From NCBI RefSeq assembly GCF_006345805.1, contig NC_043003.1, positions 109,368,001 to 109,432,000 on the forward strand: DNA of 64,000 nt, given 5' to 3'. The position numbers and the translations under genes were made by a program. The notes under the pieces are model-generated. The model did not search any database, was not told the origin of the DNA, and was given only the letters and a program-made list of their open reading frames with translations. Source of the stretch: Octopus sinensis (lineage: Eukaryota). Position 1 is the first letter of the stretch. Every line of letters begins with the position of its first letter. Below, piece by piece: positions 37,428 to 55,244 of this stretch.

Positions 37428-37471
37428 GCAAATGAAAGATGGAAAATGGAATATACAAAACTTTATTATGA

Positions 37472-37577
37472 ATTATGATAATTGTTTCGACACATCTAGC
37501 ATTGATTCCTCTTGGGTGGGACACTCAACAACTGGTTCAGGAGTATCCGGTGGTGCAGATATATCTCGTCAGATGAT
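37472..37577 (-). ncRNA. Type I hammerhead ribozyme with extended stem II (decayed copy)
   Basis: Minus strand: atcat-CTGACGA-gatatatct[59 nt]agatgtgtc-GAAAC-AATT-ATC-ataat. Mismatches in stem III (C.A) and stem I. Confidence 0.65.
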
Positions 37578-37820
37578 AAATAAACACAACTCATTAAAAT
37601 GACTGTTCCGCAATGTAACTTTCCGTTTTAAGCAGCCAAGACGGAGGAAATATCTTCATTTATACAGAAGAACAAAAATAAAATCACAGACAGCAAAAAG
37701 AGAAGCAAACATGGAATCCAACGAGAAAAGTATTAAAAATAACCATTAACAGATATGGATGTATAAACGCCCTTGGGCAAGCTGCATGGCATGAGTACAC
37801 TCGCTCGTACAAGTATCATA

Positions 37821-38033
37821 CAAAGGGGAGCTGAAAAGTTCCTGGCTTTGGGTAAAAGAAAATACAGGTGGATCTGTTAATTAAGACTTTATTCAACTTA
37901 TTCACCTCTCAGATTATTGCAGCAATCCTTCAGTTTTTTTAAGCCCTGTAAAAGAATTCTGATGGTTTGGTCTCCAGCCAGGCATTTTGCGATACCCTCA
38001 GAGCCAGGAACTTTTCAACACCACTTCCTCATG
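37821..38033 (-). mobile_element. mariner-derived MITE (same family as 24664-24864)
   Basis: ta|caaaggggagctgaaaagttcctggct ... agccaggaacttttcaacaccacttcct. Confidence 0.8.
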
Positions 38034-43789: not shown

Positions 43790-43908
43790 TTATTTGACCA
43801 TATCACATTGAAAGCACCAGTTCTCATCCGATCACCGAAGTTAAGCAACATCGAACCTAGTGAGTACTTAGATGAGTGACCACTTGGGACACCTAGGTGC
43901 TGTAAGCA
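43790..43908 (+). pseudogene. 5S rRNA pseudogene
   Basis: gaccatatcacattgaaagcaccagttctcatccgatcaccgaagttaagcaacatcg...agtacttagatgagtgaccac.tggga.acc.aggtg.tgta is collinear with metazoan 5S rRNA. Many CpG-type transitions, degenerate box C and a damaged 5' end. Confidence 0.85.
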
Positions 43909-50210: not shown

Positions 50211-50611
50211 GGGATGTAGAAATACACGGGTTGGTATCTGAGGGTGCTGTAAGGCCACTGGGAATGACAGATCCATGATCTTTGTCAAGGCCTCCCTTTA
50301 GGAGAAAGCTAACTCATATACAAAATCCGTTGCTTTACTCAGCCTAACATCTTACACTTTGCTTCTCCCTGAGCTTCTTGACATTGTTAGTGAGAGTTGT
50401 GGTGTTGTGCAAGCCATACTTGACTCAAAACACTTGAATGAGCATTGCTGACACTGAATGCCTGTCAGCAATGGTCATGCTCATACAACAAGTAGACAGT
50501 CATCATCACACACACACACACACAAGTACACATATATACATACATATATACATACATATATACATACATATATATATGTCATAACTTAAAATTGAATAGA
50601 AGATCTGAAAA

Positions 50612-50657
50612 CCACCTGATGAATGTCCTTAGAAGAGACACGAAACAATTGTAGTGG
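50612..50657 (+). ncRNA. Minimal type I hammerhead ribozyme
   Basis: ccac-CTGATGA-a tgtc cttagaaga gaca c-GAAAC-AATT-GTA-gtgg. Palindromic ACAATTGT stem III; A.C at the base of stem II. Confidence 0.78.
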
Positions 50658-50757
50658 CGAATTTAATTTTATTTAATTTATATAAAATTTTTAATGTATT
50701 GGTTTAAGTCTTTCTTTGTTTGATTTGCATAATAGTGGTTTTGTCTCTAATTAATAT

Positions 50758-52790: not shown

Positions 52791-53094
52791 TACATAGGAC
52801 ACCAAGTGTGGGTTTGGAAGTAACTATATGTGGGTACCAACGCGAATAATGTTTTACTTTATTGTATGTTTTATATTGATTTTTTGTTCTATTTTTCTTA
52901 ATTATTCCCCATCTTTGTCTATAAAGTCACAATGGAATCCGTTCCTCTCCATTCCTGCCCAATGGCTTAAACATACTGTCACTAGAACATACTGTCACTA
53001 AAACATACTGTTATTTAAATGAGCTGTCACTAACAATATGCTGTATTAAAACTGAGCAAAACAGAGTTTATTTAACAAGATACTCCTTATAACA

Positions 53095-53198
53095 TCACCT
53101 GAGGAGATGCATCTGAACCAAGGGATGCACTACAATCAGTTGTACTGTATCTCACCCATGAGGGATCAATGCAAGATGCATCGAAACAATTGTTGTGA
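53095..53198 (+). ncRNA. Type I hammerhead ribozyme with 77-nt branched stem II
   Basis: tcac-CTGAGGA-gatgcatct[59 nt]agatgcatc-GAAAC-AATT-GTT-gtga. Intact core, perfect 9-bp stem II base, followed by AATAAA. Confidence 0.8.
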
Positions 53199-53259
53199 GC
53201 AATAAAGTTTCCCATATATGCAATTTTCTGTCTCTCTCATTTGTTATATACAGCTCAAA

Positions 53260-54160: not shown

Positions 54161-55244
54161 TCAGGTCATCCTATAAGTTCTGTCCGATTTTACCATTTTT
54201 AAAATAGAATGAAATTTAATAGTATTTTCGAATGTCTAATGGGAAAGAATGCTTGAATGAAAGAACTTGCAGAAGATGGTTTACAAAATTCAGAAGTGGA
54301 GATTTCAGCCTTGAAAATGAAGATCGAACAGGACGTCCAGTTGAATTTGATGATAAGCTCCTTGAGGAATTACTTGAAGAAAATCCTGCATTATCAGTTG
54401 TAGAATTGGCAATAAAGCTTAGTTCAAGCCATACAACTGTTCATCGTCATCTTCAACAACTTGGAAAGGTTCCTAAACTTGGAAAATGGGTGCCGCATGA
54501 ATTGTCCGAAAGCAACCACAAATCCCGATTTGACATCTGCTCTTCTCTCCATTCTTGCAAACTCATTTCACCCTTTTTGGATAGACTTGCGATTGGTGAT
54601 GAAAAATGGATCTTCTATCGAAATGTTAAACGTTGTAAACAGTTGCTTGGTAAAAGGGAAAAAGCTCAACCACAACTGAGAAGGAAACTTCATGGAAAAA
54701 AGATTCTTCTCTCTATCTGGTGGGATTGCAAAGGAGTAATTCACTTTGAATTGTTATCACCTAATGCAACAATCAATGCTCAAGTCTACTGTCAGCAATT
54801 AGAGTGTTTGAACCAAGCTTTGGAGGAAAAAGACCCGCTTTAGTGAATCAAAAAAGAATGATGTTTCATCAGAGCAATGCATGTCCCCACACTGCAAAGA
54901 TCACATCACAGAAGATTGAAGAGCTTGGTTGCAAAAAAATTCCTCATCCACCTTATTCACCTGACCTTCCTCCTTCAGACTACCATTTGTTTCGTAGTTT
55001 ACAGAATCATTTATGGGACATAACTTTCGCAAGCCAGGAGGATGTCGAAACTGATATTTCAGAGTTCTTCGCTTTGAAACCAAAAGAGTTTTACATTGAT
55101 GGGATTAAAAAGTTTGTAAATAGATGGAAGGAAGTCATAGATAATCAGGGAAAGTACATTCATGATTAAATTGAAATTTAATATAACATTTGATTACTTG
55201 TTTTCTTTATTCAAAATTCAGACAGAACTTATGGGATGACCTGC
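54161..55244 (+). mobile_element. mariner transposon (about 1.08 kb, 5' internal deletion)
   Basis: TIRs tcaggtcatcctataagttctgtccgattt / aattcagacagaacttatgggatgacctg. Confidence 0.9.
54232..55169 (+). pseudogene. mariner (DD34D-type) transposase, defective
   Basis: WFTKFRSGDFSL..E.R.GRP, WVPHEL, GDEKWIFY, HPPYSPDLPPSDYHLF. Frameshift near 54830, second catalytic D replaced (HQSNACPH), first HTH missing. Confidence 0.9.

Follow-up and report, generated by a model that had tools for sequence, protein, structure and literature searches.

A hammerhead ribozyme motif with a conserved 59-nt insert in helix II at the 3' end of a Penelope-like element lineage of Octopus sinensis

What kind of element carries a hammerhead ribozyme motif with a stem II of 77 nt, and is the additional RNA a maintained part of the motif or only tolerated by it? 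This question is raised by a locus on the plus strand of a 64,000-nt stretch of the Octopus sinensis genome (contig NC_043003.1 of assembly GCF_006345805.1, forward-strand positions 109,368,001 to 109,432,000; hereafter the window, whose numbering is used below unless another locus is named), where an earlier reading of the letters alone (the original prediction) had noticed a hammerhead with a large structured domain inserted in stem II and supported by covariation. Our analysis assigns this motif to the 3' terminus of a lineage of Penelope-like elements (PLEs). We regard it as fairly probable that it is the 3'-terminal hammerhead of a PLE lineage of the Hydra clade and that its conserved helix II module is under selection as a platform for folding or protein binding.

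The motif is a complete type I hammerhead of 104 nt (53095-53198, plus strand) that matches a strict descriptor and scores 130 bits with R1, a covariance model built from 20 copies of its family. Its parts follow each other in the order UCAC / CUGAGGA / 9-bp base / 59-nt insert / GAAA / C-AAUU-G / U-U / GUGA: the 5' strand of stem I (UCAC, 53095-53098) forms 4 bp with GUGA (53195-53198), the core segment C3 to A9 (CUGAGGA, 53099-53105) has G at N7, and the 5' arm of the stem II base (53106-53114) pairs over 9 bp with 53174-53182, including G10.1-C11.1 (53106-53182), with no unpaired base between A9 and G10.1. Positions 53183-53194 hold G12-A13-A14, stem III with 2 bp (A15.1-U16.1 and C15.2-G16.2), the loop AAUU and U at H17, and within this region lies the 10-nt palindrome AACAAUUGUU; the cut site is predicted between 53194 and 53195. 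The sequence and helix features of the type I class are present, namely CUGANGA...GAAA, G10.1-C11.1, A15.1-U16.1, an H17 that is not G, and three helices with helix I open-ended. The motif is far beyond chance, as the pattern CTGANGAG-N75-CGAAACNNNNGT has 389 matches in the genome and none in the reversed control.

The 59-nt insert within stem II (53115-53173), delimited from the sequence and RNAfold, is predicted to form an inner helix of 8 bp (53122-53129/53146-53153), an apical stem of 5 bp (53131-53135/53140-53144) that is specific to the window copy and its subfamily, and a CCC/GGG mini-hairpin (53155-53157/53162-53164). The stem II domain of the window copy folds with -29 kcal/mol (z = -3.5 against shuffles). 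The original prediction had thus read the type I core, the 9-bp base and the 77-nt stem II correctly, and its 8-bp inner helix is present one base away from where it had been placed.

A DNA search of the 2.7-Gb O. sinensis genome returned 40 scored matches of 79-86% identity, nearly all of them gapless and full-length, and the genome scan with R1 gave 150 scored matches, every one at or above 96 bits and again nearly all without gaps. A 21-base pattern from the insert has 258 genome matches (0 for the reversed control) and is found in 39% of a sample of well-preserved copies, so that the sequence counts point to a family whose members number several hundred at the least and probably thousands. 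It has at least three subfamilies, and the 87 distinct full-length copies cluster into three main ones, A, B and C; subfamily B has 65 copies that differ by 7% on average from their consensus, and subfamily A holds the window copy. Copies stop about 55 nt past the hammerhead at (TA)n or (TG)n tracts. Around 10 of 100 loci consist of two copies in inverted, head-to-head orientation that meet at their truncated 5' ends, an arrangement described for PLEs (PMC8557442), and the remaining copies are mostly single; short tandem repeats in the manner of retrozymes were not seen in the family, whose copies are single or head-to-head and 5'-truncated. Copies of subfamily B are 5'-truncated at many points and some reach more than 1.3 kb upstream of the hammerhead, and these longer, variably truncated copies led us to drop the idea of a discrete non-autonomous element of about 400-410 bp. 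Family members are also present in contigs of public runs guessed to be RNA, though contigs show neither RNA ends nor cleavage. In 4 loci (L007, L009, L012 and L024), the truncated 5' end is joined directly to one common unrelated repeat (…CCAGTCAAACCGTCCAACCCATGCCAGCATGGAAA…), a junction that may reflect template switching during insertion.

The subfamily A copy in the window spans 52848-53250 (plus strand), the colinear BLAST extent of locus L001 (1254-1656) against other copies. It consists of about 250 nt of 3' untranslated region (UTR), the hammerhead and a tail of about 52 nt ending at a short TATATA tract, and is the 5'-truncated 3' end of a PLE. Within its 3' UTR part, a unit of about 16 nt (AACATACTGTCACTA) is triplicated in tandem at 52965-53012 (plus strand); this is private to the copy and absent from other subfamily A copies. 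Past stem I lies an AATAAA (53201-53206, plus strand); the consensus of each of the three subfamilies keeps it, 4-11 nt past that helix, and it may be a poly(A) signal. It stands about 40 nt before the element end, and hammerhead cleavage would remove this candidate signal.

The nature of the parent element emerges from longer copies, which bear out the claim that this is a hammerhead of the PLE-terminal type from a retroelement lineage. Loci L122 and L124 share 2.5 kb at 82% identity with the hammerhead at the end, and the translated frames of L122 are broken remnants of one long open reading frame (ORF). In order, these encode an N-terminal region (RMQWK, PADKTSNIYIVDIELY), parts of a reverse transcriptase (RT; VNFLD...KP...YINVASNHPP), the linker CSCREKSKC and a GIY-YIG endonuclease (EN) core (NLVYKCTV...YVYIGQT) that has one cysteine only, with no CxxC inside, and aligns to the GIY-YIG of L101, a PLE of another family; past the ORF follow about 365 nt of UTR, the hammerhead (6911-7014 of L122), the tail and (TA)n. 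Pfam found no domain on the ORF pieces of L122 and L124. A HMMER search against 1.8 billion proteins recovered 924 relatives of the N-terminal piece of L122, and one homolog of this piece, P0006 (806 aa), aligns with the PLE RT core of L101 across the YxDD region (E 2e-5) and has a weak C-terminal GIY-YIG match. It is these protein motifs and HMMER homologs that link L122 and L124 to PLEs.

Within the PLEs, the Hydra clade is diagnosed by DKT in place of DKG, an RWK-type motif, CxCx5C and, at the C-terminus, a GIY-YIG that lacks the inner cysteine pair (PMC8557442, section 11), and its members have (TA)n targets and a length of about 3 kb (PMC8557442). The octopus lineage has PADKT(SN), RWK-like though not exact motifs (RMQWK in L122, RMKWK in L124) and CxCx5C, it inserts at (TA)n, and it is about 3 kb or less in length. 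We would therefore place it in the Hydra clade, a placement drawn from motifs in degraded ORFs and not from a tree. A search for a partner element via GIY-YIG (PF01541) gave 150 matches, of which 21 loci were examined, including the intact PLE L101 with its 765-aa protein. None of these 21 loci has an R1 match, and tblastn finds no similarity between L101 and L122, which rules out the abundant L101-type PLE as the partner. L101 itself (G000:C6:12730300-12734700) appears to be intact, with a first ORF of 274 aa and a second of 765 aa that carries RVT_1 and the C-terminal GIY-YIG; its 3' UTR has five TGATGACGTC (CRE-like) repeats and a (TA)n end, and neither descriptor nor R1 detects a hammerhead in it.

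Is the ribozyme itself maintained? Because individual copies decay after insertion, comparisons between subfamily consensus sequences are the informative ones. At this level, N7 (G/C/U) and H17 (U/C/A, never G) are the sole variable positions of the core, and they are the two that are free in active hammerheads; N7 is G in the window copy, C in subfamily B and U in others. Over 106 distinct copies, pairing amounts to 94% in stem I, 91% in the stem II base and 93% in stem III, compared to 28-47% in slid controls. The stem II base shows exchanges between GC and AU and between UG/UA and CG across the family, with pair 15-85 being G-C in A and A-U in B and pair 14-86 being U-G, U-A or C-G among the consensus sequences. 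Subfamily A has GAUC as its stem III loop and subfamilies B and C have AAUU, and both leave ACNNNNGU self-complementary; CpG decay could have contributed to this change, which is nonetheless fixed in the B and C consensus. The resulting palindromic stem III forms, ACAAUUGU and ACGAUCGU, are those of a PLE minimal hammerhead, and that the palindrome is kept through this change fits dimer-type cleavage. When two molecules are cofolded, they are predicted to form a domain-swapped double hammerhead with an intermolecular helix III of 10 bp (ddG of about -11 kcal/mol relative to two monomers). Together, the pattern of core and stems fits a working dimer-type PLE hammerhead, though it is not proof of cleavage. 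An extended stem I was rejected as a conserved feature, as it is possible in subfamily B only.

Standard models do not recognize this ribozyme. Rfam reports no hammerhead in the window at the gathering threshold and none at E <= 10 around both window copies, where only chance matches resembling small nucleolar RNAs or microRNAs appear, and a scan of 20 PLE loci gave microsatellite-driven microRNA false positives only. We ascribe the miss to the 77-nt stem II, and R1-independent descriptors with capped loops miss the octopus motif as well.

The insert is constrained in length and in sequence. Its length is constant in A, B and C, and between the subfamily consensus sequences it aligns without gaps at 81-86% identity, compared to 84-89% for the catalytic scaffold. 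In the proximal UTR (45 nt upstream) identity is 55-74%, and in the rest of the UTR it is 48-57%, with many gaps in each. The enlarged stem II has thus been retained as originally proposed, and a fixed length and about 83% identity next to a diverged UTR make it most likely that the insert is under selection as part of a 3' module. Conservation within the insert is strongest in the unpaired tracts AACCAGUUGU and CCCACCCAUGAGGGAUCRAUGC. All three consensus sequences fold alike with high pair probabilities, giving an 11-bp base with one bulge, the inner helix (7-8 bp, positions 28/29-34/36 with 51/53-58/59) and the small CCC/GGG hairpin, and pairing in the inner helix core exceeds 90% over the 106 copies. 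We conclude with some reserve that the insert is constrained, its fold being supported by conservation and thermodynamics and not by significant covariation.

The window holds a second copy of the element. This subfamily B copy (37428-37829, minus strand) is 5'-truncated about 253 nt upstream of its hammerhead and ends in a (TA)n/(TG)n tract; the hammerhead (37473-37576, minus strand; R1 105.8 bits) is decayed, with an intact core and with the stem III pair C15.2-G16.2 (93-98) and the stem I pair 2-103 broken. It aligns with the window's subfamily A motif without gaps, with 77 of 104 positions identical overall and 56 of 77 in stem II, the latter figure exactly as the original prediction had counted by hand. 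The three pairing-preserving changes noted between the two copies are also all present (15-85 GC>AU, 35-52 AU>UA and 4-101 CG>UA). Of these, 15-85 alone is a subfamily-level difference, and 35-52 and 4-101 are private mutations of these two decayed copies.

To see how common such forms are, we counted matches to the identical flanks CTGANGAG ... CGAAACNNNNGT with varied gap in the whole genome and in the control. Beside the 389 matches (control 0) at a gap of 75 nt, there are 2,414 at 60-74 nt (control 21) and 1,377 at 2-30 nt (control 55). Judged by these flank-pattern counts, hammerheads with an intact core and a long helix II (about 2,800) are commoner than short ones in O. sinensis. The 75-nt match list holds A, B and C plus diverged relatives with a similar inner sequence (GAUGY...RYAUC, CCC...GGG), and 2 of the 4 relatives that were folded give a stem plus two hairpins. 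Another long-stem-II family, starting CTGAAGAGAAAAGAAGTTTCGG, is arranged in tandem, as in retrozymes, with a repeat length of about 598 nt (G000:C1:70560472-70568940 and C1:95522396-95534961). Two further candidate hammerheads with palindromic stem III loops (CAGCUG and CAUAUG) and 5-bp stem I were seen at L121:1184-1262 (plus strand), where a 50-nt stem II form adjoins a PLE GIY-YIG on the opposite strand, and at L030 near 319 (minus strand), with a stem II of 65 nt. A common length of 77 nt across unrelated families was considered as a sign of constraint and rejected, as other lengths are equally populated.

These observations can be assembled into a model. The short copies, both window ones included, would have arisen by target-primed reverse transcription into (TA)n tracts that left them 5'-truncated. 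The ribozyme would be of the ordinary PLE minimal type in helices I and III, and with a helix I of 4 bp and a helix III of 2 bp closed by a palindromic loop it is expected to cut, after GUH, only when two copies pair via helix III or when the element protein assists. In place of the usual helix II loop it would carry the 59-nt module, predicted to form a three-way junction in which the 11-bp base meets a 6-8 bp helix whose tip varies and the small CCC/GGG hairpin, with the strongly conserved unpaired tracts joining the junction arms. The conserved 3' module as a whole would comprise about 45 nt of upstream sequence, the hammerhead, the AAUAAA 4-11 nt past helix I and the tail of about 55 nt where genomic copies stop. 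In the only PLE studied in vitro, the Poseidon element PAc of the green anole, the hammerhead is located upstream of the internal RT start site, at a distance of about 85-90 nt (PMC11167929), and this hammerhead cuts only with the element's protein present (PMC11167929). By analogy, the octopus insert may serve as a folding scaffold, as a docking site for the RT/EN protein adjoining the start of reverse transcription, or as both.

Several observations weigh against a selected helix II module, and most of them concern its fold. Significant covariation inside the insert was not found among the 106 distinct copies. Changes in the inner helix (G-U/A-U/U-G) are one-sided or wobble, with a register shift between A and B. 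In the apical stem, the middle three pairs are open in 76-89 of the 106 copies, and in the mini-hairpin pair 61-70 is lost in about half of the copies and CCC/GGG is weakened in subfamily B, the largest. The whole structure beats the shuffle control, yet the hammerhead stems and relatedness account for this, and the comparison comprises only 3-4 independent subfamily lineages. Inside the insert only the 6-8 bp helix is maintained. The covariation claimed at the outset therefore stands for stem I, the stem II base and the palindromic stem III loop and falls for the insert; its apical stem and CCC/GGG hairpin are predicted in the window copy, whose near-perfect fold is owed partly to private mutations. 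In addition, no intact autonomous copy of the lineage was recovered among the loci examined. Other hammerhead families of the same genome hold unrelated, AT-rich stem II inserts of many lengths (50-76 nt), and a stem II base can be common to short and long hammerheads (e.g., GACCCAGAAUGGGUC at G000:C1:209363551-209363583 versus GACCCAGACUGC...GCAGGAUG...), so that the two forms differ by one block of about 60 nt in loop II. Unrelated inserts and coexisting short and long forms suggest that loop II may simply tolerate cargo, and the 59-nt block would then be a passenger whose conservation stems from recent ancestry or from exchange of the 3' module by template switching. Engineered hammerheads, too, accept aptamers on stem II. 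We nevertheless consider a neutral passenger unlikely, since the insert, free of indels, matches the catalytic scaffold in conservation whereas the UTR beside it cannot be aligned between these subfamilies, its unpaired tracts are its most conserved parts, and one predicted fold recurs in all three consensus sequences and in two diverged relatives.

It could also be the ribozyme that has lost its function, with the whole 3' module being kept solely for recognition and priming by the RT. PLE minimal hammerheads cut poorly in vitro (PMC4209133), cleavage of PAc is dispensable for insertion in vitro, with catalytic mutants still inserting and no reads ending at the cut site (PMC11167929), and most octopus copies are single and have no dimer partner in cis. 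The dispensability of cleavage in PAc counts against our preferred reading as well. However, a core that changes only at N7 and H17 (never to G) and a helix III palindrome kept through a two-base change point to selection on ribozyme geometry, and a relic that no longer cuts seems to us quite improbable. The last alternative places the function of the insert tracts at the DNA level, as promoter or factor-binding sites housed in a loop that spares the ribozyme. The B-box consensus of RNA polymerase III (Pol III) promoters is GWTCRANNC, and the GATCRATGC of the insert (53164-53173, at the same place in all subfamilies) fits it. Terminal repeats of PLEs are also known to carry promoters (PMC11167929). 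Still, the B-box match was made post hoc with a chance of about 2% in 77 nt, and inspection of the subfamily B consensus by eye showed no A box. ARAGORN detects no tRNA-like fold either, and a tRNA-like origin of the insert was rejected on this ground. Since the consensus-level G.U pairs in the kept helix fit RNA of this strand and the conserved AATAAA suggests RNA polymerase II transcripts, DNA-level function is in our view very improbable, and selection on an RNA module in helix II is the reading that we retain.

The window contains some further features of interest. At 50607-50662 (plus strand; R1 32 bits) lies an ordinary minimal hammerhead of the PLE type with short stem II and the same GAAACAAUUGUAGUG, within a fragment of about 200 bp between (TA)n tracts. 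A full-length match to 5S ribosomal RNA (43790-43908, plus strand; 73 bits) with several non-canonical pairs could be a 5S gene, a pseudogene or a 5S-derived repeat, and remnants of a mariner/Tc1-type transposase (Transposase_1, HTH_48 and a weak DDE_3) are found at 54232-55169 (plus strand).

Both the ribozyme and the type of element are known, and what appears undescribed is that helix II bears so large a conserved module and that this form is so abundant. The searchable literature on metazoan retrozymes and on octopus makes no mention of long-helix-II forms, and helices II of 6-8 bp in viral hammerheads are already termed "long" (PMC13725137). The architecture, which the original prediction had not recognized, is indeed absent from Rfam and from this literature; it is not peculiar to this lineage, as several unrelated long inserts occupy stem II in other families of the same genome. 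What we describe is one hammerhead lineage that keeps a 59-nt branched helix II domain over many copies and several subfamilies while escaping Rfam, and its insert offers a concrete RNA handle for the study of protein-assisted cleavage in PLEs. Going further, it is conceivable, though we would call it doubtful, that structured helix II domains define a general, overlooked class of retroelement hammerheads in which each lineage has its own module of 50-77 nt that docks or switches the element protein and makes cleavage protein-dependent. If this were true, PLE clades reported as hammerhead-less, such as the Naiads with their split "half cores", may carry hammerheads after all. Hammerheads are searched for with descriptors that set an upper limit on helix II size, and our results give reason to revisit these clades with open-ended ones.

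Compared to known systems, the octopus motif is closest to the minimal hammerheads of PLEs, with which it shares the type I topology, a helix I of 4-5 bp, a helix III of 1-2 bp with a palindromic loop that implies dimer-dependent cleavage, the G10.1-C11.1 pair, the location at PLE termini and the many variable copies per genome. It differs from them in its helix II, which is a hairpin of 6-8 bp in PLE minimal hammerheads (PMC4209133, Cervera & de la Pena 2014) and has 77 nt with a predicted three-way junction in octopus, and in that it is without the unpaired base that these usually have between A9 and G10.1. The C-terminal GIY-YIG, DKT, RWK-type and CxCx5C motifs, the missing CCHH pair, (TA)n insertion, length of about 3 kb and occurrence in molluscs are all shared with PLEs of the Hydra clade (PMC8557442). 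However, "canonical" hammerheads are readily detected in Hydra families (PMC8557442, Craig et al. 2021), whereas the octopus lineage has the long-stem-II form. The "HHR_half_core" of Naiads, which are also (TA)n-inserting PLEs, is similar in that the core halves lie farther apart than descriptors allow (35-50 nt in Naiads; PMC8557442). Pairing stems have not been demonstrated for these half cores, which belong to elements with an N-terminal EN, whereas all three helices and both core halves are present in octopus. Metazoan non-LTR retrozymes, in turn, are short non-coding repeats that are related to PLE termini and likewise contain type I hammerheads (PMC7229834, Cervera & de la Pena 2020). 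Unlike these retrozymes, which are tandem arrays giving circular RNAs, the octopus family is dispersed as 5'-truncated single copies or head-to-head pairs. Finally, engineered allosteric hammerheads (aptazymes) are artificial constructs in which a ligand-binding aptamer and a communication module are placed on stem II. The octopus form shows no sign of control by a ligand or protein but, with a structured RNA domain at the same place, this lineage would be a natural counterpart of such stem II aptazymes.
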